From: Hyalangium minutum
GTDB lineage: Bacteria > Myxococcota > Myxococcia > Myxococcales > Myxococcaceae
Reading direction: 5' to 3'
DNA length: 64,000 bases
NCBI RefSeq assembly: GCF_000737315.1
Contig: NZ_JMCB01000008.1
Span: 62,001 to 126,000 of the forward strand
Made by a program: the position numbers and the translations under genes. The notes beneath the pieces are model-generated. The model saw only the letters and a list, made by a program, of their open reading frames with translations. It ran no database searches and was not told the origin of the DNA. This document shows, piece by piece, positions 36,875-63,846 of this stretch (the stretch's first letter is position 1; each line of letters begins with the position of its first letter).

Positions 36875-37231
36875 TTAGGGCGAGGGATGAGTCTCCGCCG
36901 GCGGGCTCGAGGGAGCGAACCTCGGCTCCGGCGCCTGCGGAGCGCGCCCTCCCCCGCCGCCCGAGGGAAGCTGGGGCAACGGCCACCCCTCGAAGAGAGG
37001 CCAGCCTCGGTAGTAATCCGCTGCACCGGACGAGGCCTCACCTGGAGCCTGTGGAGCGGGCTGTACCTCTGCCCCTGGGACGCTCTGCCGGGGGGCCTCT
37101 CGAGTCCCCTGCGCCCCCGGTGGCCGCGTCCTGAGCAGCACCACGACCAAGACCGCGCTCAAGAGGAACATGAGCACGATGCCCGCCACGCGGGCACGGT
37201 CCTCCTCCATCCCTGTGTCCACAGTGTCCAT
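36875..37231 (-). CDS. Small single-TM Pro-rich hypothetical protein
   Basis: Hydrophobic VAGIVLMFLLSAVLVVVLL; starts 1 bp after the CLC stop. Confidence 0.5.
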   Translation of the reverse strand: MDTVDTGMEEDRARVAGIVLMFLLSAVLVVVLLRTRPPGAQGTREAPRQSVPGAEVQPAPQAPGEASSGAADYYRGWPLFEGWPLPQLPSGGGGGRAPQAPEPRFAPSSPPAETHPSP

Positions 37232-37232
37232 G

Positions 37233-38999
37233 TCAGAAGCGCCCTTGCTTCAACACATCGCTCTTGGAAATCGTGCCGAGCAACCTCCGCTCGGTGTCGA
37301 CGACAGGCAGGCGCTCGAGCGGTGTCGTGGCAAAGCGCGCCGCCACCTCGGACAGGGAGAGGTCCGGCGTCACGGGCCGGAGGTGCCGATCCATCACGTC
37401 CGCCGCGATGGTCGCTCCCAACAGCGAGTAGTCCGGCAGGTGGCCCTTGAGCTCGTCCAGCGTGATTGTCCCCAGGTACCGGCCCTCCTCGTCCGTGACG
37501 TAGAGGTCCGCCCCCGAGGGTTGCTCCAGCAGCAACACGACGATCTCCTGGAACGAAGCCGACGGCGGGACGCGGTCCCGCACCGGCATCAACATGGCCC
37601 GGGTCCCCTCCTCGCGCAGCCAGTGTGGAACGCTCTCGGGGATGCGCACGTTGCGGCGGCTGAGCACGGACGTATAGAGCGACTCGGGCTCCAGCCGTCG
37701 GCTGATCATCGTCGCCAGGAAGGCCCCCAGCATCAGCGGAAGGATGAGCCCGTAGTCCCCCGTCAGCTCGAAGATGATGAGGACCGCCGACACGGGCGCA
37801 TGCGTGGTCCCCGCGAGCACCGCCCCCATCCCAAGCAAGGCATAGGCCCCACTCGGGGCTCCTCCGGGCCACACGTACTGCATGACCTGGCCAAAGGCGC
37901 CGCCCAGCAGTGCTCCATAGAAGAGCGAGGGTGTGAAGAGCCCGCCCGGAACCCCCGCCCCCGCGCAGAGCGACGTCGCCAGCAGCTTCGCCAGGGGCAG
38001 CACCACCAGCAGCACCAGCGACAGCTTCCCCAGCAGTGCCGCGTTCACCGCGTCATAGCCATTTCCCAGCAGGTGCGGCAGCCACACGGCCGCCAGCCCC
38101 ACCAGTGTCATCGCTCCCAGTGGCAGGAAGGGTGTGAGCTTCCGAGGGACCCGATCGAGCAGGTCCGACAGCACGTTGATGCCGCGCACATAAAGCGCGG
38201 AGGCGCCCCCCAGGAGCACGCCCAGGAGCACGGCCAGCAGCAGCTCGCGCGGGTGCATCACATAGTGAGGGATGACGTAGCTGGGGTGATCCGCGATGAG
38301 GATCCGCGACACGAGGGTGGCCACCACGCACGCCAGGACGATGGGACCGAACAGCTCCAGCGCGAACGAGCCCAGCAGCACCTCCAGGCCAAAGAGGGCC
38401 GCGCCGATGGGCACGTTGTAGGCCGAGGCCACCCCCGCCGCCGCGCCACACGCCACCAGCAACCGGGCCTGCCCCGGCCCCAGCCTCAGCCAGTGCCCCA
38501 GGAAGGAGCCACTCGCCGCACCCGTCTGCAGCAGCGCGCCCTCGCGGCCCAGAGGCGCCCCGAGCGCTACCGCGACGATAGAGACCAGGCCCCTCAGCAG
38601 CGCCCGAGGCAGGGACAGCCGGCCCGACTTGACCCAGATGGACTCGATGATGCCGGCGGTTCCGTGCCCTCGCAGCGGCTGGCCGATGAGGAGCGTCACC
38701 AGCGAGACCAGGGCGCCGCCCAGCACCGGGACGAGGAAGCGCCTCCAGGACGGCGAGGCGATGACGCCCGAGAGGAACCCCTCCGCCTCGCTCCCCCAGA
38801 AGAGGTGCTGGGTGAAGCGCAGCACCTTGAGCAGCACCACTGCCCCCATCCCCGAGATGAGCCCCACGAGGGCGACGAGCAGCCAGAACCGGCGCTCGGC
38901 CCGGACCAGGCCACGCAAGGTGTTACGGAGTCGTGAGCGGAAGCCGCGGAACGGTTCCAGCCTGGGAGTGGGCATCGAGAGTGTCGCCACGTCCCTCAA
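37233..38999 (-). CDS. CLC-family chloride channel/transporter with tandem CBS domains
   Basis: GHGT, LGREGA, YNVPIGAALF, GGLFTP and FELTGDY motifs plus C-terminal CBS pair. Confidence 0.9.
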   Translation of the reverse strand: MRDVATLSMPTPRLEPFRGFRSRLRNTLRGLVRAERRFWLLVALVGLISGMGAVVLLKVLRFTQHLFWGSEAEGFLSGVIASPSWRRFLVPVLGGALVSLVTLLIGQPLRGHGTAGIIESIWVKSGRLSLPRALLRGLVSIVAVALGAPLGREGALLQTGAASGSFLGHWLRLGPGQARLLVACGAAAGVASAYNVPIGAALFGLEVLLGSFALELFGPIVLACVVATLVSRILIADHPSYVIPHYVMHPRELLLAVLLGVLLGGASALYVRGINVLSDLLDRVPRKLTPFLPLGAMTLVGLAAVWLPHLLGNGYDAVNAALLGKLSLVLLVVLPLAKLLATSLCAGAGVPGGLFTPSLFYGALLGGAFGQVMQYVWPGGAPSGAYALLGMGAVLAGTTHAPVSAVLIIFELTGDYGLILPLMLGAFLATMISRRLEPESLYTSVLSRRNVRIPESVPHWLREEGTRAMLMPVRDRVPPSASFQEIVVLLLEQPSGADLYVTDEEGRYLGTITLDELKGHLPDYSLLGATIAADVMDRHLRPVTPDLSLSEVAARFATTPLERLPVVDTERRLLGTISKSDVLKQGRF

Positions 39000-39077
39000 T
39001 CTAGGGAGGGCCGACAGCCCATGCGGGACGGCCGCCCGTCTGCTTACAGTGTCACCCGGCGAGACGCCGAGCCCCCC

Positions 39078-39902
39078 TCACTCCGCTCGGCCGAGCAGGA
39101 AGGACAGCGCCAGCAACGTGAGCACCACCGACGTCACCCAGACAAACGCGCGGTCCCGCTGCTGCCGGAAGATGAGGAGCGACAGCGCCACCCGCGCCAC
39201 GGGGATCGCCATCATCACGAGCAAGATGTCCCCTCTCGCGAAGTAGACGCCTGCGCTGGCCGCCGCCGTTACCCCGATCATGAAGTTGCTGGTGGCCGTG
39301 GACACCTTCAGGGGCAGCCGCATGGCCAGGTCCATGGCTGGCACCTTCAGCGCGCCCGAGCCGATGCCCAGCAGCCCACTCACCGTCCCCGCCGCGTACA
39401 TGAGCGCCAGCCCGGTGAGCGGCCGGGTGACGCGGTTGTCCACCTCGCGGCCGGTGGCCTCGTCGAAGTAGCTGCTGTGCAGCGCCAGCCGGTCCGCCAG
39501 CGCATCCGGTGGCACCGGAGCATCCGCTCGCGCCCCCAGCTTGCGCAGCATCGCCAAGGCCGAGTACCCCATCACCAAGCCGAAGACGAGGTACAGCCCA
39601 CGCCCACCCACCACGCCCGCGAGGAAGGCTCCCGTGAGCGCCCCCGCTGTGGTCGCCATCTCCAGGAACATGGCCACGCGCAGGTTCGCCAGCCGGTCCC
39701 TCACATAAGCCGCGGCGGCCCCACTGGAGGTGGCGATGACGGACACGATGGAGGCCCCCACCGCATAGCGGATGTCCACCTTGAGCAGCAGCGTGAGGAC
39801 GGGAACCAGGATGAGCCCACCCCCCAGCCCCAGCAGCGAGCCCAGCAGCCCCGCGGTGACGGAGATGGCGAACACCACGGTGACGAAGAGAAAGGGAGTC
39901 AT
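39078..39902 (-). pseudogene. TSUP (TauE/SafE) transporter fused in frame to a DUF1634-like C-terminus (deletion chimera)
   Basis: TSUP motifs LLGLGGG, GLLGIGSG and STATSNFMIG end at ARGDI, then switch to LLVMMAIPVARVALSL...RDRAFV; junction near 39224/39225. Confidence 0.7.
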
Positions 39903-40104
39903 CGCGCCAGGAGAAGGCGCCCTCACCTTCCCTCTTCCGCTCCCCGTCGACAACCCGCGGCGCGAGTCTGAGTCATGGAAGGTATGTGCCCGCCTGCTCG
40001 GAAACGGGGGTGGAGCCACTGTGGGGCAAGAATGCGTCCGGTGGTCATCAGGGCAGAGCGGACGATGCCCGCCTCCCTCGGGGTGCCCAGGTTGTGGCTG
40101 GACC

Positions 40105-42669
40105 ATGCGCCTTCCCCTCCCTCGCTCCCGTCTCCCAGAGCCTCTGGACAGCACTCGCGGTCTGAGCGAGGCCGAAGTGGCCGCGCGCCGACAGCGCTAT
40201 GGGCGCAACAACATCCTCGAGGCGCCTTCCTACACCTGGGCCGAGCTGTGCCGGAACACCGTGAGCGATCCCATGCTCTGGTTCCTGGTGTGCACCAGCG
40301 TGCTCTACCTCGTCCTGGGACAGCCAGTGGAGGGCTGGACGCTGCTGGCCGCGATCGTGCCGCTGGCGGGGATGGACGCCTGGCTCCACCACCGGACGCG
40401 CGCCTCGATGGAGGGCTTGAGCCACCAGTTGGCCGAACACGCCGTCGTCCTGCGAGAAGGCACGCTGCAGCGGGTGGAGGCCACGGATGTGGTGGTGGGG
40501 GATCTGGTGGAGGTGGCCGCGGGAGAGCCCTTCCCCGCCGACGGACTGGTGGTGGCGGGCGAGGGCCTCCAGACGGAGGAGTCGTCGCTGACGGGCGAGT
40601 CTCAGCCCGTGCGCAAGCGGCCCCTCCGCGGCGAGCTCCCACCGGGTAACGATCCCCTGGTGGAGTGGACGCACTGGGGACTGGCGGGGACACGGCTGCT
40701 CACCGGACGCGCGGTTCTCCGGGCCGTCTTCACGGGCGAGGAGACGCTCTATGGGCGGATCACCCGGACGGCCACGCGCCACCAGCGGGCCCGAACGCCC
40801 CTGCAGGCCGCCGTTCAGGGGTTGGTGGCCATCCTCCTGGCCGCCGCGGCGTCCTTCTGCGGTGTCCTCGCCTTCGTGCGCTGGCGCCAGGGCTACGGCT
40901 GGCTGGATGCGATGGTGAGCGCGGCCACGTTGGCGGTGGCGGCACTCCCGGAGGAGTTCCCCGTGGCCCTCACCTTCTTCCTGGGCTCGGGGGTGTACCG
41001 GCTCGCACGCCGCCGAGCCCTCGTGAAGCGGGCCGTGTCGGTGGAGAACATCGGCCGCGTCACCTGCATCTGCATGGACAAGACGGGCACCCTCACCGAG
41101 GGACAGCTCCGCGTCGCCAGCTGCCTGCCCATGGCTCAGGTGTCTCCCGCCCGGCTGCTGCATGCCGCGTCCCGGGCTTCGCGTCCGGAGAACGGCGATC
41201 CGCTGGATGGGGCGATCGCCGCCGCCGCCAGCGCCCAAGGGCCCACGGCGCCTCCCTCCGAGGTGCTGGCCCTCTTCCCCTTCACCGAGGAGCGGCGCCG
41301 GGAGACCGCCGTGGTGCGCGAGGACGATGGCCTCTGGGCCTTCACCAAGGGCTCGCCCGAGGTAGTGCTGGCGGCGTGTACGCTCTCGCCCGAGGAGCGC
41401 GCGGAGTGGAGGCACGAGGTGGAGGCGCAGGCGGCGCAGGGGCGGAAGGTGATCGCGTGCGCGGAGCAGCGGCTCGACGCCCACGGCTGGCTCGGCGGAG
41501 AGCCCTTGCGTGGCCTGCGCTTCCTGGGTCTGGTGGTCTGCGCGGATCCCGTCCGCCCAGGCGTGGCCGAGTCCATCGCCGCCTGCCACCGCGCGGGGAT
41601 TCACCTGGTGATGGTGACGGGAGATCACCCGGAGACGGCCCGCGCGGTGGCACGGGAGATCGGCCTGGGAGGTGAAGCTCCCAGCCTCCTGCTCGGAGAG
41701 GAGCTGGAGGCCCGGCTGAGCCAGACGGGCGGCGTTCTCCCTCGAAACCTGGACATCATCGCGAGGACGCTTCCTGCGCAGAAGCTGGAGCTGGTGCGTG
41801 CGCTGCAGGCCTCCGGAGAGGTGGTGGCGGTCACGGGCGATGGGGTGAACGATGTGCCCGCGCTCCAGGCCGCGGACGTGGGCATCGCGATGGGCGAGCG
41901 TGGCACGCGCAGCGCTCGCGAGGTGGCCTCCATCGTCCTGCTGGACGACAACCTCCACAGCATCGTTGGAGCCATTGCTGAAGGCCGGCAGCTCTTCCAC
42001 AACTTGCGCACGAGCTTCCAGTACCTGCTGCTCATCCACATCCCCCTGGTGGTGACGGCGGCCTTGATTCCGCTGGCGGGCTACCCGCTGCTGTACATGC
42101 CCATCCACGTCATCTGGCTCGAGCTCATCATCCACCCCACGGCCCTGCTGGCGTTCCAGGACGCGGCGAGTCCCGAGGCGCTGCGGCCCTCCGAGCGTCC
42201 TGTCCAGGTGCGCTTCTTCTCGCGCGGCGACTGGGCCGCCGTCTGCGTGTCCAGTGTCGTGCTGGTGGGCGTGATGGTGCTGGGCTACGAGTGGAGCTTG
42301 GGCGGCCATCGCAACGTGGAGCACGCCCGGGCCATGGCGATGGTGGCGCTCACCGTGGCGAGCGCTGGCTTCTGTGCGCTCCTCAGCGGCCTGCGGACCC
42401 GTCTGGCCAAGCTCATCTGCGCGGCCACGCTGGCCAGCGCCCTGGTGCTCGTCCAGGTGCCTGCCCTGGCGCGTCTGCTGCACCTCTCACCCCTGCACGT
42501 TATGGATTGGGGGTGGGCCATCGCGGGAGGAGCCATGGCGTGCCTACCGCTCCTGCCTCGACTCTTCCTCCCGTGGCAGCGCCCGAGGCCCACCCCTCAA
42601 GTGCCGCCAGGCACGCCCAGGCCCAGTCGCCGGTCAGGTTTCAAATGGCCGAGGCAAACGCACGGATGA
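40105..42669 (+). CDS. Cation-transporting P-type ATPase (P2-like)
   Basis: [26 protein letters not shown]. Confidence 0.92.
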   Translation: MRLPLPRSRLPEPLDSTRGLSEAEVAARRQRYGRNNILEAPSYTWAELCRNTVSDPMLWFLVCTSVLYLVLGQPVEGWTLLAAIVPLAGMDAWLHHRTRASMEGLSHQLAEHAVVLREGTLQRVEATDVVVGDLVEVAAGEPFPADGLVVAGEGLQTEESSLTGESQPVRKRPLRGELPPGNDPLVEWTHWGLAGTRLLTGRAVLRAVFTGEETLYGRITRTATRHQRARTPLQAAVQGLVAILLAAAASFCGVLAFVRWRQGYGWLDAMVSAATLAVAALPEEFPVALTFFLGSGVYRLARRRALVKRAVSVENIGRVTCICMDKTGTLTEGQLRVASCLPMAQVSPARLLHAASRASRPENGDPLDGAIAAAASAQGPTAPPSEVLALFPFTEERRRETAVVREDDGLWAFTKGSPEVVLAACTLSPEERAEWRHEVEAQAAQGRKVIACAEQRLDAHGWLGGEPLRGLRFLGLVVCADPVRPGVAESIAACHRAGIHLVMVTGDHPETARAVAREIGLGGEAPSLLLGEELEARLSQTGGVLPRNLDIIARTLPAQKLELVRALQASGEVVAVTGDGVNDVPALQAADVGIAMGERGTRSAREVASIVLLDDNLHSIVGAIAEGRQLFHNLRTSFQYLLLIHIPLVVTAALIPLAGYPLLYMPIHVIWLELIIHPTALLAFQDAASPEALRPSERPVQVRFFSRGDWAAVCVSSVVLVGVMVLGYEWSLGGHRNVEHARAMAMVALTVASAGFCALLSGLRTRLAKLICAATLASALVLVQVPALARLLHLSPLHVMDWGWAIAGGAMACLPLLPRLFLPWQRPRPTPQVPPGTPRPSRRSGFKWPRQTHG

Positions 42670-42829
42670 ACTGCTCCTCGCGCTCGCGAGGCATCCGGGG
42701 GGCCGCAGGGAGGGCGGCCTTGCCCCGTCCACCCCCTGTAGCCTTCAGCCCCAACACCGGAGCACTCGGGCGGCAGGACACTTGGTCCACCCACTCTCCC
42801 CTGGGCTCCCGAAGGCCCTACTCTTCTGT

Positions 42830-43106
42830 ATGTCACTCGAACGCTTTTGTCGGAAGCAGGTGGCCACCGCCCTGGCAACCGAGACGGTCCAGGCGGCAGC
42901 CGAGCGAATGACCCAGCAGCACGTCGGTGCCCTCGTCGTCGTGGAGGACTCGGGACAGCCGGTCGGCATCCTGACAGACCGCGACATCGTCTGCCGCGTC
43001 CTGAACGAGCGGCGAGATCCAGGCACCACCTCCATCCGCGAGGTGATGAGCGCCAACCCCGTGGTGGCCCGTGACACCGAACGGATCGACGAGGTGGTCT
43101 TCACCA
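42830..43106 (+). pseudogene. CBS-domain protein, 3'-truncated
   Basis: HVGALVVV...GILTDRDIV first CBS intact; the second CBS breaks at EVVFT, then reads into antisense pdhA until the stop at 43180. Confidence 0.75.
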
Positions 43107-43395
43107 CCTTCGCGAACATCTCCGCCATGATGGCCCGGGCGGGCACTCCGCGCGCCAGGGCGTGCCCGTGCTCGCGGTAGTGCGAGACGATGGCGTCCTC
43201 CGGCTGGAGCGCGCGCAAGGCGCCCACCGCGCAGGCCTCCTCACCGATATAGAGGTGAAGAAAGCCGCGAATCTTCCCCGCGCTGTAGGCCTGGGCGCTC
43301 GCCTCCTCGAAGCGGCGGATGAGCTGCATCTGCCGCAGCCAGCCGAGCGCCTCGTCCCGGGTGGGTGCCAGCGTGGGAGGGGGCTTCTCGCTCAT
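43104..43395 (-). pseudogene. pdhA: Pyruvate dehydrogenase E1 alpha, 3'-truncated (about 97 codons left)
   Basis: [34 protein letters not shown], then lost; no GDG ThDP-binding motif. Confidence 0.85.
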
Positions 43396-45146
43396 GGCGA
43401 GGCCTCCAGGGTGGAGGTATCCCCCTCGGGCAGACCCTGCTCGCGGGCCTTGAGCAGCCGGCGCATGATCTTCCCCGAGCGCGTGCGCGGCAGTGTGGGC
43501 AGGAACTCCAGCTCTTTGGGGGCGACCACCGCGCCCAGCCGCGTGCGCGCGTGGGCAAGCAGCTCCCGGCGCAGCGCCTCCCCGGGGGTGAAGCCCTCCT
43601 TGAGGGAGACGAAGGCCTTCACCACCTCGCCGATGGTGGGCTCGGGCCGGCCGATGACACCCGCCTCGGCCACGGCGGGGTGCTCGAGCAGCGCGCTCTC
43701 CACCTCGAACGGACCAATGAGGTGGCCCATCGACTTGATCACATCGTCGGCACGCCCCACGAACCAGAAGTAGCCGTCCGCGTCCTTCCGGGCGAGATCG
43801 CCGCTGAGGTACCAGCCGCTGGCGAAGCACTTGCGGTAGCGCTCCTCCTCGTGAAGGTAGCCGCGGAACATGGAGGGCCAGCCCGGACGCAGCGCGAGCT
43901 CCCCCTCGGTGTTGGGCGTGTCCACGGGCTCCACGCTCCCGTCGGGCCCACGCCGGACGATAGCGGCCTCCACCCCTGGCAGCGGCCGGCCCATGGAGCC
44001 CGGCTTGATGTTCATGGAGGCGTAGTTGGCCACCATGATTCCGCCCGTCTCCGTCTGCCACCAGTTGTCGTGGATGGGCAGCCCGAGCGCCTGCTGTCCC
44101 CAGAGGACTGCCTCCGGATTGAGGGGCTCTCCGACGCTGGCGATGAAGCGCAGGGTGCCGAGGTTGAAGCGGCGGGGCAGCGCCTCACCGGCCTTCATCA
44201 ACATCCGCACCGCTGTGGGCGCCGTGTACCAGACCGTGACGCGCTCGTCCTGGAGGATGCGGTACCAGCGCTCGGCGTCGAAGTCCGCCTCGTCCACCAC
44301 GCAGGTGAGGCCGTGCGTCAGCGGAGAGATGATGCCGTACGAGGTACCCGTCACCCAGCCAGGATCGGCGGTACACCAGAAGATGTCGTCCGGGTGGAAG
44401 TCCAGGACGAGCGTCCCAGTGACGTGGTGGGCGAGCACCGCGCGGTGGACATGAATGGCGCCCTTGGGAGTGCCGGTGGTGCCGCTGGTGAAGTGCAGCA
44501 GGGCCATGTCCTCGGGAGCAGTGGGGCCAATCGTGTAGGAGTCACGGGCACGCTCCAGGAGCGCCAGGAGCGCCTGGGTGCCCTCCCCCGCCTCTCCGTC
44601 CACGAGGAGCACGTGCCTCAGCTCCGGGAGCGAGCCGCGCAGCGGCGCCACCTTCTTGCGGTAGAGGGCCTCCGTCGTCACCAGCACGCGGGCGCCGCCG
44701 AGTTGGAGGCGGGCGCGGATGGGCTCGGGGCCAAAGGCAGAGAACAAGGGGCAGAAGACGGCCCGGTGCTTCAGTGTGCCGAGCGCGGTGATGTAGAGCT
44801 CGGGGATGCGCCCCAGCAGCGAGAAGACGCGCTCGCCGGGTGAGAGGCCCAAGCCCGCGAGCACGTGGGCGAAGCGGCTCGTCCAGGCCGAGAGCTCTGC
44901 ATAGGTGAGGAGCCTGCGCTCGCCATGGCGGCCCAGCCAGCGAAGCGCCTGCCGCCCTCCCCGTCCCTCCAGGATGTGCCGGTCCACAGCCTCGTGGGCG
45001 ATGTTGAGACCTCGTCCATCGGGGAGCCCGGCCAGCTCGCGCTCCGCGGCCTCCCAGGAAAAGGACGCACGCGCCGCCTCGTAGCTGGGCATGTTGGGTG
45101 CGCCGCGCCAGTCTGGGTGCAGCTTGCGGATCATCCGCTCGTCCAT
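43392..45146 (-). CDS. acsA: Acetate--CoA ligase (AcsA type)
   Basis: [36 protein letters not shown]; ATG 45146. Confidence 0.92.
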
Positions 45147-45309: not shown

Positions 45310-46194
45310 TCACAGAGGCTCCAGCACCCGGCGGAGATGCATGAGCACCTGCTTGATCTTCGGAATCTCCGAGAGCGCCTCGGGCACGCTGATTCGGAGC
45401 GCGCGCTCACGCCCCACCACGGTGGGCAGCACGGGCACCAACAGATCTTCGGGAACGCCGGGATCGGGCAGGTCCGCGCTGGGGACCAGGCCGATCCCCA
45501 ACCCCGCGATGCAGCAGGAGCGGATGAAGTGGATGTCCGCCGTGATGAGCGCCGGCTCGACCCGGATCGACGGCCCGCGCAGCGTGGGCCAGGAGCGTGC
45601 ATCCCCTCCTGGCGCTTCCCAGGAGAAGAGCTCGTGGCCTTGCAGCTCCTCCAACGAGCGCGGCGTCCCATTCCGCTCCAGGTAGTCCCTGCTGGCGATC
45701 AGCCCCTCGCGCACCCGCAGCACCACCTGAGAGAGCCACGGCCCCCGCGGCGTGTCCTCGCCAAAGTGGACCGCTATGTCCACGTCGTCCAGCGGCTCGC
45801 CCAGGGGATCGGCACTGAAGCGGGCGTGGACGTGGAGCAACGGATAGGTGCTCCGGAACGCTCCGAAGAGCGGCGTGAGCAAGTGCGGCGGCAGCCCCAC
45901 GGGCATCACCACCCGGAGCGTGCCCGAGGGCTCATGGCCCACCTCACGGATGGAGGCCAGCAGCGCGCTCGTCTCCTGCATCATGATCCGCCCACGCTGG
46001 GCGAGCACCTCCCCGGCCTCGGTCAAGAGGATGCCCTGCCGCGTGCTCTTGAGGAGCGGCACGCCCGCGCGCGCCTCCAGGGCTTCGACCCGGCGGCGCA
46101 GGGTGGTGCGTGACACGCCCAGCGACTCAGCGGCCGCCAGAAAGGACCCCGTCTCCGCGACGTCGAGAAAGGCCCTCAGCTCTTCCAGATCCAT
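45310..46194 (-). CDS. LysR-family transcriptional regulator
   Basis: [36 protein letters not shown]. Confidence 0.92.
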
Positions 46195-46334
46195 GCGCTT
46201 GCCTCGCTGCCAGGAATGAAGTGCCACGCCCGCACTGCACAGAGTTTGGACACCGCATGTCCGTCTTCGGCCATCCCTCGTGCGCCGCCGCGAGTACGAA
46301 GAGAGCGTCCAACTTCCCACAGGTGGAATGCCCC

Positions 46335-46973: not shown

Positions 46974-47130
46974 CCCCAGGCGCGAAGTACGAGCCCTGGA
47001 CTGAAACTGAACGGGCCCCCGATCGACTCGTTGAGACTCGTAAGTTTGCCCTCGGGATGGCTTGAGGGCTCCAGCGCCCCAGCCCAAGGTCTGCCCCCTG
47101 TCGCGGGACTGTGCTCGCGCTGGAGGTGCC

Positions 47131-48351: not shown

Positions 48352-48352
48352 C

Positions 48353-52811: not shown

Positions 52812-53040
52812 GGTGCTGTCCACGGTGGAGGGCCCGCTGCGCATGGGGCGCGTGGCCTTCGGCCAGGTCATCAAGGAGGTGTGCCTGGCCTATGTCCCCG
52901 AGGCCCAGCCCGGAGACTTCGTCGTGGTGCATGCCGGCTTCGCCATCAGCCGTGTGGATCCGGAGGGAGCCCTGCGTGTCTTCGCCTACCTGGAGGAGCT
53001 GGGCGAGACGGCCGAGAAGCTGGGAGGCCAATCCCCATGA
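52789..53040 (+). CDS. hypC: Hydrogenase assembly chaperone HypC
   Basis: [16 protein letters not shown]. Confidence 0.96.
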
Positions 53041-54131: not shown

Positions 54132-55174
54132 GCACCCTCTTGAACCGGAGCTGCCCCGCACCGCTGAAGCACAGCACCATCCAGCTCGCGCACGGAGGAG
54201 GCGGACGGCTCATGCGCCAGCTCATCGAGGAGGTCTTCCTGGAGCCGCCTCCCGCCCTGGCGTGGACCGAGCGCCATGACAGCGCGGTGGTCCCCCTCGG
54301 CACGGAGCGACTGGCGCTCACCACGGACTCCTACGTGGTGACCCCTCGCTTCTTCCCTGGGGGAGACATCGGCAAGCTCGCGGTGTACGGCACGGTGAAC
54401 GACCTGGTCATGTCCGGGGCACGCCCGCTGTACCTGAGCGCGGGCTTCATTCTGGAGGAGGGGCTGGCGATGGAGGAGCTGCGCCGGGTGGTGGCCTCCA
54501 TGCGCGAGGCCGCCCGGGAGTGCGGCGTGAGGCTCGTCACGGGAGACACCAAGGTGGTGGACCGAGGCAAGGCGGATGGGCTCTTCATCAACACCTCGGG
54601 CGCGGGCCATGTGCCCGAGGGCCGCTCCGTCCACCCGAGGCGCGTGAGGCCAGGGGACGCGGTGCTCGTCTCTGGAGACGTGGGGCAGCACGGCATCGCC
54701 GTCCTCTCGGTGCGCGAGGGGCTCGCTTTCGAGACTCCCGTTCAGAGCGACTGCTCGCCGCTCACGCCGCTGGTGGAGGCGCTCTTCAGCGCGGGGGTGG
54801 ATGTGCATGCCCTGCGAGACACGACGCGAGGGGGGCTGGCCTCGGCCCTCAATGAACTGGCCCTCGATGGTGGAGTGAGTGTCCTCTTGGAGGAGACCTC
54901 GGTGCCGGTGAACGAGGCGGTCTCGGGAGCCTGCGAGTTGCTGGGCCTGGATCCCCTCTACGTGGCCTGCGAGGGGCGCATGGTGGCCTTCGTGCCCGAA
55001 CCCCAGGCAGAGGTGGCCTTGGCGGCCCTGCGCGGCCATCCCCTCGGTGTGGCAGCGGCCCGGATTGGGCGTGTCACCGAGGGCCCCGCGGGCAGGGTGT
55101 CTCTGCGCACGCGCCTCGGCGGACACCGGCTCTTGGATCTGCTCTCCGGGGAACAGCTCCCGCGCATCTGCTGA
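54128..55174 (+). CDS. hypE: Hydrogenase expression/formation protein HypE
   Basis: [26 protein letters not shown], terminal PRIC. Confidence 0.96.
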
Positions 55175-55182
55175 AGCGCCGC

Positions 55183-57636
55183 TCACCCCGCCCTGCGCAA
55201 GCGGATCCAGCGGCGCACCAACTTGGCCAACTCCAGCGCCGTCACGGGGATGAGACCGAGCGCGAACATGAGCACCATCTCATTCCAGGGCAGAGGCACC
55301 AACTCGAAGAGGGTCCGCACCGCGGGAATCTCATAGAGCGCCCCCTGGATGAGCACAGACACGAGGATGACTCCGAGCAGCACCCGGTTGGTGAAGACAC
55401 CCACCTCCCAGAAGATGCGCGTGGAACTCCGGGCGATGAACGAGCGCAATAGCTCCGCGAAGACAAGCGTGGAGAACGCCAGCGAGCGGGCCCGCTCCAA
55501 GTGCGCCGCGGGATCCGCCCACAGGAAGACCCCGAGCACCACGGCCGCCTCGAGCGCACCGGCGGCGAAGATGGTGCGCCACTGAGCGCCTCCGAGCATC
55601 GGCTCATCGGGGCGGCGCGGTGGGGCCTGCAGCAGCTCGAGCCGGGCGGGGTCCATCACCAGCGCCAGCGCCGGCAGGCTGTCCGTCATGAGGTTGATCC
55701 AGAGCAGCTGCAACGGAACCAGGGGTAGGGGTTGGCCCATCAGCAGGGCGATGACCATCAGCAGGAGTTCACCCACATTGCCCACGAGCAGATACACCAG
55801 CGTCTTGCGAATGTTCTCGTAGATGGCGCGGCCCTCGCGGATGGCCGCCACGATGGTGGCGAAGTTGTCATCGGTGAGGACGATGTCCGCGGCCTCACGC
55901 GTCACCTCGGTGCCGGTGCGCCCCATGGCAATACCGATGTGAGCCTCGCGCAGCGCGGGCGCATCATTCACGCCGTCCCCGGTCATCGCCACCACCTCGC
56001 CGCGCTCCTTCCAGCGCCGGACGATGCGCAGCTTCTCCTCGGCGGTGACGCGGGCGTGGATCAGCTCGGAGGGGTCATCGCCCTCGCGAACGATTCCCAG
56101 CTCACGCCCGATGGCGAGCGCCGTCACGGGGTGATCGCCGGTGATCATCACCGTGCGGATTCCCGCCGCCCGTGCCGCAGCGACGGCCTCGATGGCCTCG
56201 GGCCGGGGCGGGTCCGCCATGCCCATCAACCCCAGCAGCTGGAGCCGCTCCTCCTCCGGACCCGAGCCCCGAGCCACGGCCAGCACCCGGAGTCCTCGAG
56301 AGGCCATCGCCTCGGCCTTCGCGAGCGCCCCTTCGGTGCCAGAGGTGCAGCGCGAAAGCAGGACCTCGGGCGCGCCCTTGACGGAGAGGACGCCATCCGC
56401 GCGCAGCACGGACATCCGCTTCCGCTCGGAGTCGAAGGGCTGCACGGCCACGCGGGGGTTCTCGCGCTCGATCTGCTCGCGCTGGATGCCACGCTCCAGG
56501 GCCGCGCGCAGCAGGGCCAGCTCCGTGGGGTCTCCTGTTCCTTCCTTCCCTTCGGGCCCGAGACTCGCGTCACAGCACGACGCCGCAGTCCGGAGGAGCG
56601 CCTCCTCATCTGAGCCCCACAGCTCGCGCACCGCCATGCTACCCGTGGTGAGCGTGCCGGTCTTGTCGGTGCACACCACCGTCGCCGAGCCCAGCGTCTC
56701 CACGGCCTGGAGCCGGCGCACCAGGGCATGCCGGCTCGCCATCCGCCGCACGCCCAACGCCAGGGCAATGGTCACCACGGCTGGAAGCCCTTCGGGCACG
56801 GCCGCCACCGCCAGCGAGATGGACGAGAGCAGCACGGGCAGCCAGCCCATGCCCCGCAGCAGGCCCAGCGCCGCCACAAGCAGCACGATACCGCCGCAGA
56901 CGATCAACAGCGCCTGGGTCACCCGGTTGAGCCGCTGTTGCAGCGGCGTCTCCGTGTCCTCGGCGGAGGCAAGCAGGTGGGCAATCTGCCCCAGCTCCGT
57001 GCGCATGCCAGTGGCGGTCACCACCGCCGTGCCCGTCCCTCGCGACACCGCGGTTCCCATGAACACACGGTCCGTGCGCTGCGCCAGGGGTGTTCCCTCG
57101 GGCGTGGGCCGGATGGACTTGTCCACGGGGGCGCTCTCTCCGGTGAGCGGCGCCTCGCTCGTGGCGAGCGAGTAGGCCTCCAGCAGCTGCGCATCCGCGG
57201 CCACAATGTCGCCCGCCTCTAGGAGCAGCACATCTCCCGGGACGATCTCCGCCGCAGGCAGATCGATGGGGTACCCATCGCGCAGGACACGGGCCCGGGG
57301 CGCGGTCATGGAGCGCAGCGCCTGCATGGCCTGCTCGGCCTTGAATTCCTGAGCGAACCCGACGAGCGCGTTGAGCACCACGATGATGCCAATAGCGATG
57401 GCGTCCGCCCGCTCCCCCATCAGGAAGGAGGCGACACTGGCCGCGATCAGCAGAGCGATCATCGGTGAGCGGAACTGATCCAGGAAGAGGCGCCAGCGGG
57501 GCCGAGCGGCCTCCCGGCGAATCTCGTTCCGCCCGGACTCGAGCAGGCGGCGTGCGGCCTCTGAGGTGGTCAATCCCGGGTTCATGGCTCCAGGGAGAGG
57601 GTACTCGCTGGAAGGCAGCGGGGTGGTGACGGCCAT
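55183..57636 (-). CDS. Cation-transporting P-type ATPase (Ca2+-type, PEGL)
   Basis: [35 protein letters not shown]; start ATG 57636 (or 57585). Confidence 0.92.
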
Positions 57637-57663: not shown

Positions 57664-57749
57664 GGCAGCCCCTCCCCTTTTCACATCCCGCGCCAGCAGC
57701 CCCACCTTGAACCGGACCGGTGTTGCCCTGGGAGGGGCTGCCTCCCAGG
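57664..57749. repeat. Overlapping inverted repeats in the divergent ATPase/ppsA intergenic region
   Basis: GGCAGCCCCTCCC (57664-76) pairs with GGGAGGGGCTGCC (57730-42); competing hairpin CCTGGGAGG/CCTCCCAGG (57727-49). Confidence 0.75.
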
Positions 57750-57860
57750 CTGCCCTCATGAGTCTCCTCACGCGCGGTTCATGCCTATCAAGAAGGAAGC
57801 ACCGAGTGCGGCCCGGCGCTGGACCGCACCTCACAGACGGCCTCGAGGAGGGAGCAGGCC

Positions 57861-60320
57861 ATGGAACTGACGATGCCGCCGAAGAAGGGGCCCGTGACGC
57901 GAGGCGTACCTGGGCAGGAGCCAGGCCCACGAGAGGAGCCCCCTGCCCTGGTGATCTGGTTCGAGTCTCTCTCCCGAGGAGACACGGCCATCGCGGGGGG
58001 CAAGGGAGCGAATCTGGGGGAGCTACAGAAGGCGGGCCTGCCAGTGCCTCGGGGCTTCGTGGTCACCGCCGCGGCCTTCCAGGCGTCCATGGAGCCCATC
58101 CGCTCCAAGCTGACGGACCTCTGGCGGCGCATCGATCCGGACAAACCCGAGTCGCTCGCCATCCTGTCCGATGAGCTGAAGAAGCTCGTGCGCAAGATCG
58201 AGTTCCCAGCCTCGTTGCGCTCGGCCCTGCTCTTGGCCTATCGCCAGCTGGGGAAGGATCGAGCGGTCGCCGTCCGCTCGTCCGCGACGTCCGAGGACAC
58301 GGCCGCCACCTCGTTCGCGGGGATGCACGAGACGTTCACCAACGTGGTGGGAGAGGAGGCGGTGCTCGACAAGGTGCGCGAGTGCTGGAGCTCCGCCTAT
58401 GGCCAGCGCGTAGTGGCCTACCGCAAAAGCCAGGGTGTCTCCGAGGAGCCCACCCTCGCCGTGGTGGTGCAGGAGATGGTGGACTCGGCGCGCTCGGGGG
58501 TGATGTTCACCGCGGATCCGGCGACAGGCAGCCGGGATCGGCTCATCATCGAGGGCGCCTTCGGACTGGGCGAGGTGGTCGTCGGCGGGCAGGTGGAGCC
58601 GGACACCTACGCTGTGGACAAGCAGCACATGCGGGTGCTGGAGGTCCGCGTTGGCCACAAGGACTACCAGATCGTCCGTGAGGGACACGGGCAGGAGCGC
58701 CGCGTGGATCTGTCGCCCGAGGAAGCGAGCCGCCGCGTGCTGAAGGACGAAGAGGTGCTGGAGCTCGCGCGGCTGGGGCTGAACGTGGAGCAGCACTACG
58801 GCTCGCCGCAGGACGTGGAGTGGGCCGAGTCGGGGGGGCGCATGTACCTCGTCCAGTCGCGGCCCATCACCACCCTGACGGAGACTGTGGGCCCAGCGAA
58901 GAGGTTGTCCCGAACGAAGGAGCCCGTGCTCGTCACGGGGATGGGCGCCTCCCCTGGCATCGTCTCGGGCCGCGTGCGCGTCCTACACAAGCCCGAGGAA
59001 GGGCGGCACCTGCGCAAGGGCGAGATCCTCGTGGCGCCGATGACATCTCCGGACTGGGTGCCCACGCTGCGCCGGGCCGCCGCCATCATTACGGACAGCG
59101 GCGGAATCACGTGCCACGCCGCGATTGTCAGCCGTGAGCTGCGGATCCCCTGCGTGGTGGGGACACGCATGGCCACTCGGGTGCTCCGCGATGGGGAGGA
59201 GATCACGGTGGATGGCGCCACGGGTCAGGTGCGCGCAGGGCTGGAGGAAACTCCTACCGCCGAGCCCACGAACGCCACCGTCCAGAGAGCCCCAGCCATG
59301 GCTGTGAGTCCCGGGGATCCGGAGCCGCTGGCCACGCGCCTCTATGTCAACCTGGCGATGCCGGGACAGGCGAAGGAAGTGGCGGCGATGCCGGTGGACG
59401 GTGTGGGCCTGCTCCGCGCCGAGTTCATGCTGACGGACGCGCTCGGGGGAGTGCACCCGAAGCGGCTGCTAGCGCTCGGGAGACGCCAGGAGTTCATGGA
59501 CAAGCTGTCCGGGTCGCTGCTGGAGATCACCCGCGCATTCCGGCCACGACCGGTCGTCTATCGGACCACGGACTTCCGCACCAACGAGTTCCGGGGACTG
59601 GAGGGTGGCGCCGAGTTCGAGTCCGCCGAGGCCAACCCGATGATCGGCTATCGCGGCTGCTACCGGTACATCCGTGAGCCGGAGATCTTCCAGCTCGAGC
59701 TGGAGGTACTGGCGCGGGTACGCGAGGAGACGTCCAACCTGCACGTGATGATTCCCTTCGTGCGCACGAAATGGGAGCTGGAGGCGTGCCTGGAAGCCAT
59801 CGATCGAAGCCCGCTGGGGCGGCAGCGAGGGCTGGAGCGCTGGGTGATGGCAGAGGTGCCCTCGGTGGTGTACCGCATCCCCGAGTACGCGCGCATGGGC
59901 ATCACGGGCGTGTCCATCGGCTCCAATGATTTGACGCAGCTCATGCTGGGGGTGGATCGGGACTCGGAGGTGTGCGCGGAGCTGTTCGACGAGTCGGACG
60001 CGGCGGTGCTGGATGCGATTGTGCGCATCATCCGGGCCAGCCTCGAGGCGGGCATCACCTGCTCCTTGTGTGGCCAGGCGCCCTCCAACCGCCCCGAGTT
60101 CGCCGAGCACCTGGTGCGCGCGGGCATCACCTCCATCTCGGTGGACCCGGGGGCGGTGGGCTCGGCGCGGAGGGTGATCGCGGCAGCAGAGCGGCGCTTG
60201 CTGCTGGAGGCCGCGAGGCAAGGAGGCGCCCGTGGAAGCGACGATGCGCGCGATGGTGCTCCCAGCGCCTGGACAACCCCTGCGGGAAGAACGATGGCCC
60301 CTGCCCATCCCAGGTCCTGA
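57861..60320 (+). CDS. ppsA: Phosphoenolpyruvate synthase
   Basis: [31 protein letters not shown] phospho-His, [18 protein letters not shown]. Confidence 0.94.
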
Positions 60321-61254
60321 GCAGTTCCTGCTGCGAGTGCGGGCCTGCGCGGTGTGCCGCACGGACCTGCACGTGCTGGACGGCGAGCTGCCGCACGCGA
60401 AGCAGCCACTGGTGCTCGGGCACGAGATCGTCGGGACGGTGGTGGGCCTGGGCTCACGGGTGACGGACCTCGCCCTGGGCACGCGCGTGGGAGTACCGTG
60501 GCTCGGATGGACGTGTGGCCACTGTGGCGCATGTACCTCGGGCCGGGAGAACCTGTGCGCGGAGGCGCGCTTCACGGGGTACCAGCTCGATGGCGGATAC
60601 GCGGAGTACACGGTGGCCGATCACCGGTTCTGCTTTCCGCTCCCCGAGGGCTACCCGGATGTGCAAGCGGCGCCGCTGCTGTGCGCGGGGCTGATTGGGT
60701 ACCGGAGTCTGCGGCTTGCGGGCCCAGGCGAGCGACTGGGGCTGTATGGCTTTGGAGCGGCGGCCCACGTCCTCATTCAGGTGGCACGCCACCAGGGCCG
60801 GAGGGTGTACGCCTTCACACGCCCAGGAGACGCGGCGGGACAGGCGTTCGCCCGAGAACTGGGGGCGGAGTGGGCGGGCAGCTCCGAGCAGTTGCCTCCG
60901 GAGCCCCTGGATGCGGCCATCCTCTTCGCGCCAGTGGGAGCCTTGGTGCCCCTGGCCCTGAGAGCGACGGTTCCCGGGGGCGTGGTGGTGTGCGGAGGCA
61001 TCCACATGAGTGACATCCCCGCCTTCCCCTACGCACTGCTGTGGGGCGAGCGGGTGGTGCGCTCGGTGGCCAACCTGACGCGGCAAGACGGGCGGGAGTT
61101 CCTCGCGCTCGCACCGCGAGTGCCGGTACGCACCGAGGTACAGAGCTACCCATTGGAGGCAGCGGCACAGGCGCTCGAAGATCTGCGGGCGGGGCGGGTG
61201 CGCGGAGCAGCGGTGCTGGACCTGACCGGCAGCCCAGCCCCCCTTGAGGGGTGA
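60244..61254 (+). CDS. Zinc-dependent alcohol dehydrogenase family protein
   Basis: VCRTDLH, GHE, CGHCGAC-x7-C, PLLCAG, YGFGAA. Confidence 0.93.
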
Positions 61255-61483: not shown

Positions 61484-61969
61484 CTACGCCTTCACCTTCC
61501 CCTCTGGCGCCGTGCCCTGAACAGCGATCCGCTTCGGCTGGACCGCCAGCGTCTTGGGCACGTTCACGGTGAGGATGCCCTCCTTGAGTTCCGCGCGGAT
61601 CTGATCGGCGTTGATGCCCACCGGCAGAGAGAAGGTCCTCGTGAACGTGCCCGCCGAGCGCTCGGAGCAGTAGTACGTATCCGTCTCCGAGACCTGCTCG
61701 GCCTCGCGCTTGCCCGAGAGGGTGAGGCGGTTGTTGGTGACTTGGATGTCGAGGTCCTGCTCACGAAAACCGGGCACGTCTGCCTTGAAGACGTAGGCGT
61801 CCTTCGTCTCCCAGACATCGAAGGCAGGGACATACGTCCCCAGCCGCTCCGGAAGCAGCTGGGACATCGGCTCCAGGTTCAGCATCTCACGCATGGTCTG
61901 GAACAGATCCCACGGGAGCAGCGAGCGGCGGGTCGTCGGGACAGCTTCACCTCTCCTGATGATGGCCAT
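61484..61969 (-). CDS. Small heat-shock protein Hsp20
   Basis: DVWETKDAYVFKADVPG, ERSAGTFTRTFSLP, GILTVNVPK; AGGAGG RBS. Confidence 0.94.
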   Translation of the reverse strand: MAIIRRGEAVPTTRRSLLPWDLFQTMREMLNLEPMSQLLPERLGTYVPAFDVWETKDAYVFKADVPGFREQDLDIQVTNNRLTLSGKREAEQVSETDTYYCSERSAGTFTRTFSLPVGINADQIRAELKEGILTVNVPKTLAVQPKRIAVQGTAPEGKVKA

Positions 61970-62096: not shown

Positions 62097-62138
62097 GGGG
62101 TGCAGGAGCCTTGTTGGAATCAGGCTCGGCTCCCTACC

Positions 62139-62351
62139 TCATGGGTTTATCTGCACGGTGGGCTCTTCAACCTCCCTGCCCAACCCGGGGCGCAGATCGA
62201 ACGCCCTGCAGCCGCTGGCTCCAAAGACCTTCAGCTCGAAGCGCGAGAGCTCTGGATGAAGGCACCGTGCTTCTTCGCTCGCCACGGGTCTGCGAGAGAG
62301 ACTCGCGAAGTATTTGCAGTTCTGGCAGTGCCCCCAGTTTCGGTCGGTCAT
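62139..62351 (-). CDS. Small 4-Cys protein with HiPIP-like Cys spacing
   Basis: Strong AAAGGAGG RBS; CQNCKYF...RC...GASGCRAF. Confidence 0.7.
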   Translation of the reverse strand: MTDRNWGHCQNCKYFASLSRRPVASEEARCLHPELSRFELKVFGASGCRAFDLRPGLGREVEEPTVQINP

Positions 62352-62542
62352 GGTTCTTGCCACCTCCTTTCTGCAAGCTGGACGGTGTGGGCGGAGGCGC
62401 CAACTCGTGGCGGACAGGTCCAGCGGTCCCTCCTTGCACCTGCTCGGCACGATCCCACCCGCAAGCATCCGCGCGAACGGTCGCACGGCGCACCTCTCAC
62501 GCCTCTCCAGTGCAGCTGGGCGGATCGCAACGCGCCGCCCCA

Positions 62543-63140
62543 TGACCGAAGACCATGGCCGTCTGGCCCAGCACTTCGCGCCGCTTCATCTCCTCCCATA
62601 GCTCTAGCCCCTCGCGTGAGCGCTCGCCGATGCCAGCAAACACCGCGACGCCACGCAGGTGCTCCACCGCATTGCGGATGAACTCCGTCAGGATGATTGT
62701 CTTGCCGACCCCCGCGCCGCCAAAGACCGCCGCTCGCCCGCCGTGGGTGAAGGGAGAGAACAGGGCGATGGCCTTGATGCCCGTCGGGTAGAGCTGTCCC
62801 GCCCGTTGGAGCTGCGATGCCCTCGGTGGTGCACGATAGAGCGAGGCCCGCTGGAGCCCCTGGAGCGGCAGGCCGCCATCGAGCACCCGTCCGTGGAGAT
62901 CAATGACCCGGCCCAGCAGCTCGGAACCCACCGGCACAGTCAGTGGCGAGCCTTCGCTGACCACCGGATAACCCCGGCGCAGTCCTCGAGTCGAATCGAG
63001 TGCGCTCCATCCAGCTGACAATGAAGGGCCGATGCCAGCGGAGGCACCTGGTTCTGGAAGCGAACATCCACCACCGTGCCGCGCACCGCGACGACCTGGC
63101 CTTGGAACCGGGGGCTCTGTGAGGGCAGCTGGAAGGCCAT
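62543..63140 (-). pseudogene. atpD: Alternative F-type ATP synthase beta subunit, frameshifted and truncated
   Basis: GQVVAVRGTVVDVRF in one frame; after a break near 63004, ALDSTRGLRRG...TGIK...GGAGVGKT (Walker A)...GIGERSREG...MVFG, ending near 62543. Confidence 0.85.
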
Positions 63141-63168
63141 CGACACACCCGTCCACTCTTCCAATGCC

Positions 63169-63846
63169 TCATGCGCTCACTGTGGCTTCCATGGGCTTGT
63201 CGAGCCCGGCCTCCAAGGCTTCCGCGCGCTGCCGGATGCCCAACAACATCTTCCGCTCCATCAAGAAGTGAAGAGGGCCCAGGAAGAAGGCAACGAGTGG
63301 ATCTCCCGGTCTCCAGAAGTAGCTGGTGCGGACGCGGGAGACCATGCGCGTGAACCCGTTTTGCGGATAGAGCCCCAACGACCAGCTCACCTGGGACTGC
63401 CCTGGCGGCTCCTCGGGACGGGAACCGACCACCAGCGAGCCATAGGGCTCCACGGCCCTCACCGGCAAGTGCAGGCCGCGGCCCGTCGGAATCGTGTCTC
63501 CTGGCTCCAGCGTCTGGAACTCGGGCAGCAAGTGCTCCACGGTGGAGATGCGAAGCCCCGCCAGCCGCTCCATCCACTCGTAGCTGTAGAAGCCCTGGGA
63601 CCCCACCCCAAGCCGAACCAGCCAGGGCCAGATCGCCTCCGGTCGCGCGCGGACGGTAATGGCACGGTTCGAGACGTAGAAGGGCCTCTGTACCAGCTCG
63701 TCGCCGGGCATGGGACGCGTGAACTCCTCCTGAGTGGCTCCCCATCTCAAGTGCCAGGGACGCAGGATGAGCCAGTAGGCGGCGAGTCCACCCGTGCCCA
63801 CGGCGGTCAGCACGCTGGCGAAGCGGAGTCTCTTGTCGCGGCGCAT
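63169..63846 (-). CDS. SRPBCC/START-like hypothetical protein with N-terminal TM
   Basis: RPWHLRWGAT...PGDELV, IWPWLV, FYSYEW, HFLMERKMLLGIRQRAE; GAGGAGG RBS. Confidence 0.75.
   Translation of the reverse strand: MRRDKRLRFASVLTAVGTGGLAAYWLILRPWHLRWGATQEEFTRPMPGDELVQRPFYVSNRAITVRARPEAIWPWLVRLGVGSQGFYSYEWMERLAGLRISTVEHLLPEFQTLEPGDTIPTGRGLHLPVRAVEPYGSLVVGSRPEEPPGQSQVSWSLGLYPQNGFTRMVSRVRTSYFWRPGDPLVAFFLGPLHFLMERKMLLGIRQRAEALEAGLDKPMEATVSA

Follow-up and report, generated by a model that had tools for sequence, protein, structure and literature searches.

Can a hydrogenase operon from which two of the four subunit genes are missing still contribute to a working enzyme, and do the genes around it belong with it in a low-oxygen set? 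These questions are raised by a 64,000-nucleotide (nt) stretch of contig JMCB01000008.1 of the soil myxobacterium Hyalangium minutum DSM 14724 (assembly GCA_000737315.1; PMC5441343), referred to throughout as the window, which carries the large (alpha) and beta subunit genes of a group 3b [NiFe]-hydrogenase. Window positions equal record positions minus 62000, and the same numbering continued past the window end is termed window-equivalent. Because the window is 66-75% G+C, genes were called by codon-position G+C, with cross-checks against Pfam, NCBIfam and the deposited gene calls. The sequences used for comparison were L087 and L088 (contigs with an intact island, L087 being a metagenome contig from a close relative), L083 (a 4.25-Mb metagenome contig), L001 (a Myxococcaceae metagenome-assembled genome, MAG), L086 (a Myxococcaceae MAG from Zodletone spring), L084 (Myxococcus sp. 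RHSTA-1-4), L002 (Vitiosangium sp. GDMCC 1.1324), L089 (Cystobacter fuscus CP022098) and L026 (a Henriciella MAG).

A group 3b hydrogenase and its two operon copies

HydA has the features by which a [NiFe] large subunit is recognised, namely the N-terminal RxCGxC and C-terminal DPCxxCxxH Ni-Fe ligand motifs, with the gene for a HycI protease adjacent. Among structures in the PDB, the closest solved relatives were the alpha subunits of sulfhydrogenase I from Pyrococcus furiosus and Thermococcus kodakarensis (9nez, 9e15, 5yxy; E 3e-63 to 3e-61, aligned end to end), with weaker matches to Mvh (group 3c, 4e-46), NAD-reducing SH (group 3d, 5e-38) and Frh (group 3a, 4e-38 or weaker). The NCBIfam ShyA/HydA models also match HydA end to end. 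Given the solved relatives, the family models and the ligand motifs, HydA is assigned to group 3b, in agreement with what the first-pass annotation of this DNA had claimed. The likeness to sulfhydrogenase I extends to the same four subunits, since the H. minutum beta, gamma and delta proteins match the HydB/ShyB, ShyC/HydG and ShyD/HydD models. The differences are that all H. minutum scores lie well under the archaeal equivalog cut-offs, that the bacterial clade adds a gene for a cyclic nucleotide (cNMP)-binding protein between hydB and hydG, and that the H. minutum genes lie at two loci: the four-subunit set is present but in no single operon, with alpha and beta encoded in the window and gamma and delta at 64636-66274.

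Among 80 related loci spread over many phyla, hydB, the cNMP-binding gene, hydG, hydD, hydA and hycI form the canonical order, with or without hyp genes, and the cNMP-binding gene occupies its place between hydB and hydG in 72 of them. Its product is a free-standing protein of ~150 amino acids (aa) without a DNA-binding domain (examples are L002 7906-8358 and L087 8684-9145), and we know of no role assigned to it. The contig scan for group 3b loci under-reported Archangiaceae carriers; a later protein search added C. fuscus and Archangium, and HydD homologs of 87-89% identity were found in C. fuscus, Archangium violaceum, A. gephyra and Vitiosangium.

Copy 1 of the operon, inside the window, keeps hydB, hydA, hycI and hypAFCDE; the cNMP-binding gene, hydG and hydD have been deleted. 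By blastn, 1976 bp of the Vitiosangium operon (L002 7963-9939) have no counterpart in copy 1, and sequence reading and alignment place the junction of the resulting scar at ~48350-48356, at a CAAC microhomology. To its right, copy 1 keeps the synteny of the intact island (ATPase 2, PpsA). A simple loss of the gamma and small subunits was ruled out by intact genes in the gene calls beyond the window end. These belong to copy 2, located 14.5 kb downstream of copy 1 and just beyond the window end. After its intact hydD come, in order, ~180 nt of hydA with a 29-bp deletion, a 37-nt internal piece of hydA, the 3´ end of hycI, half of hypA, ~330 nt of hypF with several indels, and ffh; these remnants contain at least five frame-breaking indels (29, 2, 47, 7 and 11 bp) in ~680 nt. 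To its left, copy 2 retains the synteny of the intact L087 island: the 225-aa open reading frame (ORF) at 63169-63846 is orthologous to a gene that precedes the operon in L087.

Retention in the two copies is exactly complementary: each of the 11 operon genes survives exactly once across both, and all 11 are full length, collinear with their orthologs and free of stop codons. Both halves also keep their ribosome-binding sites and an upstream element (47031 and 64011), which is present in L087 as well, but not in C. fuscus or Vitiosangium. What is unusual at this locus is that the operon is divided in complementary fashion between two diverged copies; the hydrogenase system itself is of known type.

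How the two copies arose was approached through the segments common to both, which are 77-88% identical, each copy being 83-94% identical to L001. In a neighbour-joining tree of 676 shared sites, copy 2 was joined to L001 in 75% of bootstraps, copy 1 fell weakly with L087, and copies 1 and 2 were never recovered as a group. Since they are not sisters, the split state is old enough for decay. According to the tree and identities, either a duplication preceded these lineage splits or H. minutum acquired its second copy from a relative. The same data led us to reject a recent translocation or tandem duplication. Programmed DNA rearrangement of the cyanobacterial hupL/nifD type was likewise rejected, given that there is no recombinase, that the paralogs are diverged and in direct order, and that the remnants are frameshifted.

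That the split is a misassembly of a genome with one or two complete operons seems to us very improbable. It is true that the source is a draft with only one assembly on record, and that an environmental relative, whose HydD is 99% identical to that of copy 2, has hydD followed directly, at the place of hydA, by a gene of 321 aa or more that carries no family annotation on record and is presumably hydA. The junctions, however, lie in unique sequence, the frameshifts and nested deletions of the copy-2 remnants are not of a kind made by an assembler, and overlapping segments with only 77-88% identity are too different for collapse or swap. If the environmental gene is hydA, the decay of copy 2 would be specific to the H. 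minutum lineage.

A more serious alternative is that the island is decaying and the hydrogenase already non-functional, with the open frames reflecting a recent last inactivating deletion. Several observations count against a working enzyme. The island holds at least four large deletions (pdhA-to-CBS, the N-ATPase fragments, the copy-1 scar and multiple deletions in copy 2), so decay is active in it, and none of the other loci among the 80 has hydA without adjacent hydD/hydG, where the contig lets this be seen. In addition, hypB is absent, as it is from the relatives' clusters, and the dN/dS of 0.03-0.26 for the retained genes integrates over whole interspecies paths and thus cannot date the last deletion or prove constraint after it. 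A dead relic would, however, have to accommodate the retention of every gene of the 11-gene set exactly once and the preservation of the upstream element and ribosome-binding sites in both halves. Moreover, ~10 kb of retained coding sequence is without a frameshift, compared to at least five in ~680 nt of remnants, an indel density at which these frames would not have stayed open by chance. We consider a relic unlikely.

Our own proposal, offered tentatively, is an obligately hybrid hydrogenase in which alpha, beta and the maturation proteins come from copy 1 and gamma, delta and the cNMP-binding protein from the distinct copy 2. The combination would be locked by reciprocal loss and would share the same upstream control element, amounting to operon-level duplication-degeneration-complementation under selection, and the cNMP-binding protein could be a regulatory subunit, so far undescribed, through which activity is coupled to a cyclic nucleotide. 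Co-expression of the two half-operons would give one working alpha-beta-gamma-delta enzyme, which would dispose of excess NAD(P)H as H2, or run in reverse, when oxygen limits respiration. As in duplication-degeneration-complementation, there are two homologous copies, each of which lost what the other retains, and both would now be needed for one function. The classic model, in contrast, concerns subfunctions of single genes in eukaryotes, whereas in the present case the units divided up are entire genes of a bacterial operon, and the H. minutum copies may come from horizontal acquisition rather than within-genome duplication.

The low-oxygen interpretation

The first-pass annotation had grouped the hydrogenase with its neighbours as a hypoxia survival module and made conserved co-occurrence a condition of that proposal. 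Conserved co-occurrence is indeed seen, and the co-location of the island genes is more than chance; relatives share these neighbours, as do some other phyla. The island is intact in L087 and L088 (CBS, PGA_cap, hydB-cNMP-hydG-hydD-hydA-hycI-hypAFCDE, P-type ATPase, PpsA), and similar sets occur in a Myxococcaceae MAG, C. fuscus, Vitiosangium and Sorangium. The downstream ATPase-PpsA pair has the same order in L001 as in L087, and the ATPase 2/ppsA arrangement of H. minutum is syntenic with L001, L087 and L088 (84-85% nt identity). The C. fuscus operon is flanked by a P-type ATPase-hemerythrin fusion, NAPRTase and CBS; in the Henriciella MAG, Acs-E1ab and PRTase flank the operon; and in Sorangium, whose group 3b clusters are already in the literature (PMC7285500), PpsA, with or without a P-type ATPase, lies upstream. 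In C. fuscus, the hemerythrin domain fused to this ATPase (L089 1-1409, ~6 kb from hydB on its upstream side) is a hint that the ATPase partner may be linked directly to O2 or iron. The operons of L087, C. fuscus, Vitiosangium and Sorangium cellulosum So ce56 are orthologous to that of H. minutum and have the same gene order, with 80-88% nt identity in the Archangiaceae relatives. They are single and contiguous, however, whereas in H. minutum there are two diverged copies, each missing genes that the other keeps, and the adjacent pyruvate dehydrogenase (PDH)-like and N-ATPase operons have been lost as well.

Initial tblastn counts for the companions (ATPase at 10 of the 80 loci, PpsA at 9) were reduced by family checks, which discounted three ATPase matches without the P2/P3 terminal domains, one "PpsA" that was PtsI and one that was PPDK. 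After these checks, P2-type ATPases flank the operon in four loci outside Myxococcota, and phosphoenolpyruvate (PEP) synthase or PPDK does so in four.

In the aerobe Mycobacterium smegmatis, a hypoxia-induced DosR-type cluster (msmeg_3926-3955) contains the Ni-Fe hydrogenase Hyd3, a P-type ATPase and a PEP synthase and is induced at 2.5% and 0.6% O2 (PMC2799521). The H. minutum region resembles the cluster of Hyd3 (Hyh, msmeg_3931-3927) in having a five-gene group 3b unit, a cation P-type ATPase and a PEP synthase in the same cluster, and Hsp20/CBS-type companions nearby. It differs in that the operon is split into two complementary halves, in that the window has no Usp genes, and in that a LysR regulator and a free-standing cNMP-binding protein are found instead of a DevR/DevS two-component system or DosR box. 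The DosR-type gene content of the window comprises the hydrogenase, two P-type ATPases, PpsA, Hsp20 and CBS; Usp, PGA_cap and PRTase are absent from it but present in the relatives' modules. The PGA_cap, PRTase/NAPRTase, CBS, Usp and Hsp20 families belong to the M. tuberculosis DosR regulon. By analogy with M. smegmatis, and given the conserved co-occurrence, a hypoxia module is plausible. For Cystobacterineae, where the first-pass annotation knew of no such description, literature searches likewise turned up no account of a module of this kind or of what it does physiologically; group 3b genes themselves are not rare in this suborder, as the HydD homologs indicate.

The search for regulatory signals gave no indication of common control by oxygen. 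Among the gene calls at ~27-70 kb, no DosR/DosS- or FNR-type DNA-binding regulator was found, the only regulators there being the LysR protein, a lone receiver domain beside the pst operon and the cNMP-binding protein. DosR-like boxes (GGGAC-N4-GTCCC core, at most one mismatch) were not enriched, with 6 found compared to 6.4 expected and none in an island promoter, and no sigma-54 promoter (TGGCAC-N5-TTGC, at most one mismatch) was present in the island. Likewise, 6- to 9-mers shared among 10 island intergenic regions did not exceed shuffled controls, and the hydB upstream element was absent from the other island promoters. Motif discovery, which the first-pass annotation had suggested, thus gave no motif common to the promoters, and the resemblance it had seen to hypoxia regulons extends to the hydrogenase/P-type ATPase/PEP synthase trio of msmeg_3926-3955 but not to a DosR-type regulator or an enrichment of DosR boxes. 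Companion linkage outside Myxococcota and mycobacteria is also only occasional, at ~5% of loci each for P2-type ATPase and PEP synthase/PPDK. The only perfect match to the DosR-box core in the window, the palindrome GGGACATACGTCCC (61827-61840), lies inside the hsp20 coding sequence and is probably due to chance.

These negatives fit a functional hydrogenase that works outside a hypoxia programme, for example in H2 oxidation for NAD(P)H or in sulfur/polysulfide reduction, with neighbours linked by island history and not by common regulation. Also in line with such a role are the patchwork nature of the island, the Acs and hydrogenase modules being on different contigs or loci in L083, L086 and L001, and the bidirectional nature of group 3b enzymes, which were first described as sulfhydrogenases (PDB entry names). 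It does not account for the recurrence of PGA_cap, PRTase/NAPRTase, CBS, Usp and Hsp20 beside the modules in relatives, a DosR-regulon-like set. Nor does it account for the repeated linkage of ATPase and PEP synthase to the operon across suborders and phyla, or for their co-induction with Hyd3 under hypoxia in M. smegmatis (PMC2799521), and we regard this explanation as quite improbable. We lean, if only somewhat, towards reading the region as a mosaic, partly eroded stress-type gene island centred on a cytosolic group 3b NAD(P)-linked [NiFe]-hydrogenase that forms a low-oxygen set with its neighbours. On the M. smegmatis Hyd3 analogy, PEP synthase, P2-type ATPase, zinc-dependent alcohol dehydrogenase (Zn-ADH), acetate-CoA ligase, Hsp20 and CBS proteins would act with the hydrogenase as a low-oxygen/redox-stress set.

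Companion genes, deleted operons and island borders

Family and gene calls confirmed the co-located maturation genes, acsA, ppsA, Zn-ADH, Hsp20 and two P-type ATPases reported by the first-pass annotation (Table 1). Others of its calls held in part. The CLC-CBS channel is intact, but the free-standing CBS gene is a one-domain fragment; the "pdhA" is indeed E1-alpha sequence but a fragment of ~97 codons only; and the "second atpD" is N-ATPase beta sequence in two fragments only. No support was obtained for a HiPIP-like protein, as neither end ORF (36875-37231 and 63169-63846) has any Pfam or NCBIfam match and the latter contains no cysteine.

Table 1. Coordinates of features in the window and, in window-equivalent numbering (w.-e.), of operon copy 2 past its end
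Feature	Position	Strand	Basis and remarks
tRNA-Arg(CCG)	36535-36609	-	ARAGORN; left edge of variable region
CLC-type chloride channel + C-terminal CBS pair	37233-38990	-	Pfam Voltage_CLC 303 bits + CBS; 585 aa
TauE/SafE-family anion permease	39078-39926	-	Pfam TauE 129 bits; 282 aa
P-type cation ATPase 1, P2/P3-like	40105-42669	+	Cation_ATPase_N and _C domains
CBS-domain gene, 5´ fragment	42830-43106	+	Pfam CBS at ORF residues 158-206; first CBS domain alone left of two
E1-alpha (pdhA-like) gene, 5´ fragment, ~97 codons	43104-43395	-	E1_dh positions 1-84 of 300
Acetate-CoA ligase (AMP-forming)	43392-45146	-	NF003313 equivalog, 892 bits vs cut-off 729
LysR-family regulator	45310-46227	-	Pfam HTH_1 + LysR_substrate; sole DNA-binding regulator inside island
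CHRD-domain protein, signal-peptide-like N-terminus	46335-46973	+	Pfam CHRD
Conserved upstream element, copy 1 (GAAGTACGAGCC ... GACTCGTTGAGACTCGTAAGTTTGC)	46984-47050	+	common to copy 2 and L087
HydB, beta subunit (Fe-S), copy 1	47131-48282	+	Pfam Fer4_22, NCBIfam sulfhyd_HydB/ShyB; 81% aa identity to Vitiosangium, dN/dS 0.20
Deletion scar, 34-codon ORF	48292-48396	+	first ~20 codons of cNMP-binding gene fused to last ~14 codons of hydD
HydA, [NiFe] large subunit, group 3b	48393-49688	+	RICGIC and DPCISCATH ligand motifs + C-terminal extension; dN/dS 0.21-0.23
HycI-type maturation endopeptidase	49685-50167	+	Pfam HycI
HypA nickel metallochaperone	50160-50501	+	Pfam/NCBIfam
HypF carbamoyltransferase	50511-52811	+	full length, all five domains
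HypC	52789-53040	+	starts MCLGIPG
HypD	53037-54131	+	Pfam HypD 498 bits
HypE	54128-55174	+	ends in PRIC
P-type ATPase 2, closest to Ca/PMR1-type P2A	55183-57636	-	Pfam/NCBIfam; P2/P3-type terminal domains; divergent from ppsA
PEP synthase (pyruvate, water dikinase), ppsA	57861-60320	+	NF005057, 826 bits vs cut-off 598
Zn-dependent alcohol dehydrogenase family protein	60232-61254	+	TIGR02822, 348 bits vs cut-off 283
Hsp20/alpha-crystallin small heat-shock protein	61484-61969	-	family call; 77-79% nt identity to Hsp20 beside Acs modules of L083, L086
Non-coding remnant	62139-62433		blastn 80.7% over 295 nt to L086 18921-19214 (between PRTase and CBS genes)
Alternate F1Fo (N-ATPase) beta-subunit gene, two fragments	62497-63146	-	TIGR03305 positions 74-204 and 1-31 of 449; Pfam ATP-synt_ab 1-78 of 213
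Conserved hypothetical protein, 225 aa	63169-63846	-	no family match; blastn 81% to L087 5824-6580
Start of operon copy 2	63964-64000	+	remainder outside window
Upstream element, copy 2	63964-64040 (w.-e.)	+	matches copy 1 element
hydB' remnant, last ~47 nt	64131-64177 (w.-e.)	+	alignment
cNMP-binding gene (153 aa), intact	64178-64639 (w.-e.)	+	gene calls
hydG (gamma), intact	64636-65493 (w.-e.)	+	NCBIfam ShyC/HydG
hydD (delta, small subunit), intact	65495-66274 (w.-e.)	+	NCBIfam ShyD/HydD, full model length
Decayed hydA', hycI', hypA', hypF' pieces	to ~67045 (w.-e.)	+	self-blast, blastn to relatives
ffh	from 67541 (w.-e.)		gene call

Acs homologs 92%, 87% and 85% identical to that of H. minutum head intact Acs-E1-E2 operons in L083, L086 and L084, respectively. 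The order in L083 is Acs, E1-alpha, E1-beta, E2, PP-binding protein, PRTase, CBS and P-type ATPase; L086 has the same genes plus a few interspersed extras, and in L084 the Acs-to-PP-binding core is followed by a dehydrogenase and a P-type ATPase. Hsp20 and PGA_cap are near the Acs module in L083 and L086, as is Usp in L086. In the window, the PDH/acetoin-dehydrogenase-like E1-E2 operon downstream of acs is incomplete, the E1-alpha fragment being all that is left of it. As revealed by blastn against L083, acs and 290 nt of E1-alpha directly abut the beginning of the CBS gene, with the deletion junction at 43104-43106 and a loss of 4144 bp of L083 (12044-16187), which encompass the 3´ part of E1-alpha, E1-beta, E2, the PP-binding protein, PRTase and the 3´ end of CBS. 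On the other side of the junction, 42757-43106, which takes in the CBS fragment and the region upstream of it, is 85-88% nt identical to the CBS genes of L083 and L087, which are intact (140/162 aa), the alignment ending at 43106. P-type ATPase 1 is the ortholog of the 829-aa ATPase beside CBS in L083 (71% nt identity). Overlapping the end of its gene, a 94-nt stretch (42631-42724) is 83% identical to the 3´ end of the L087 Glu/Leu/Phe/Val dehydrogenase gene and, by this similarity, is probably a further deletion remnant. The window does not hold a complete atpDCQRBEFAG N-ATPase operon, no other atp gene being among the calls near the beta-subunit fragments. Together with these fragments, the non-coding remnant at 62139-62433 suggests that a second copy of the Acs-side module may once have been present here.

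The intergenic region between ATPase 2 and ppsA contains two blocks, the palindrome GGGAGGGGCTGCCTCCC (57730-57746) and TGCCTATCAAGAAGG (57782-57796). The second is fully conserved with L087 and L001 and the first largely so (central GCCTCC half); both are candidate operator/promoter elements and are unrelated to the hydB upstream element. At the other end of ppsA, the frame continues for ~34 codons after the PEP-synthase model has ended and shares 89 nt with the start of the Zn-ADH gene as called (60232-60320), which reflects either an adh start called too early or an altered ppsA 3´ end.

The island extends from ~36.6 kb to ~67 kb (window-equivalent). Its left border is formed by tRNA-Arg and core genes, its right border by ffh. 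The core genes, left of ~34.8 kb, include glyA, fab genes, the pst operon with phoU and a CNNM/CorC protein. By its G+C content, the region does not stand out. The tRNA-Arg gene was considered as an integration site and rejected, as there is no att-like repeat of the tRNA and its 3´ end points away from the island. Abutting this 3´ end is a DUF6310/DUF5953 gene pair (35005-36421, + strand) in the lowest-GC stretch of the window (0.635), with a weak codon-position signal, which could be either a small element that has integrated here or a pair of the toxin/immunity type. Elsewhere in the window, at 1792-4140, overlapping ORFs of 710 and 752 aa on opposite strands have identical codon-position G+C statistics.

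Implications

These results leave existing knowledge of the mechanism of group 3b enzymes unchanged. The locus illustrates that annotation of a limited window can wrongly call a system broken, and the complementary half-operons are a clean example, in a bacterium, of how copies that arose by duplication or acquisition undergo reciprocal loss. With the island intact in L087 and C. fuscus and eroded and split in H. minutum, there is also a natural experiment in which comparison tests the purpose of the module. Should the composite enzyme be functional and respond to low oxygen, the nominally aerobic, fruiting Archangiaceae would share the H2-based redox valve of mycobacteria, which would be relevant to their survival in fruiting bodies, biofilms and waterlogged soil.

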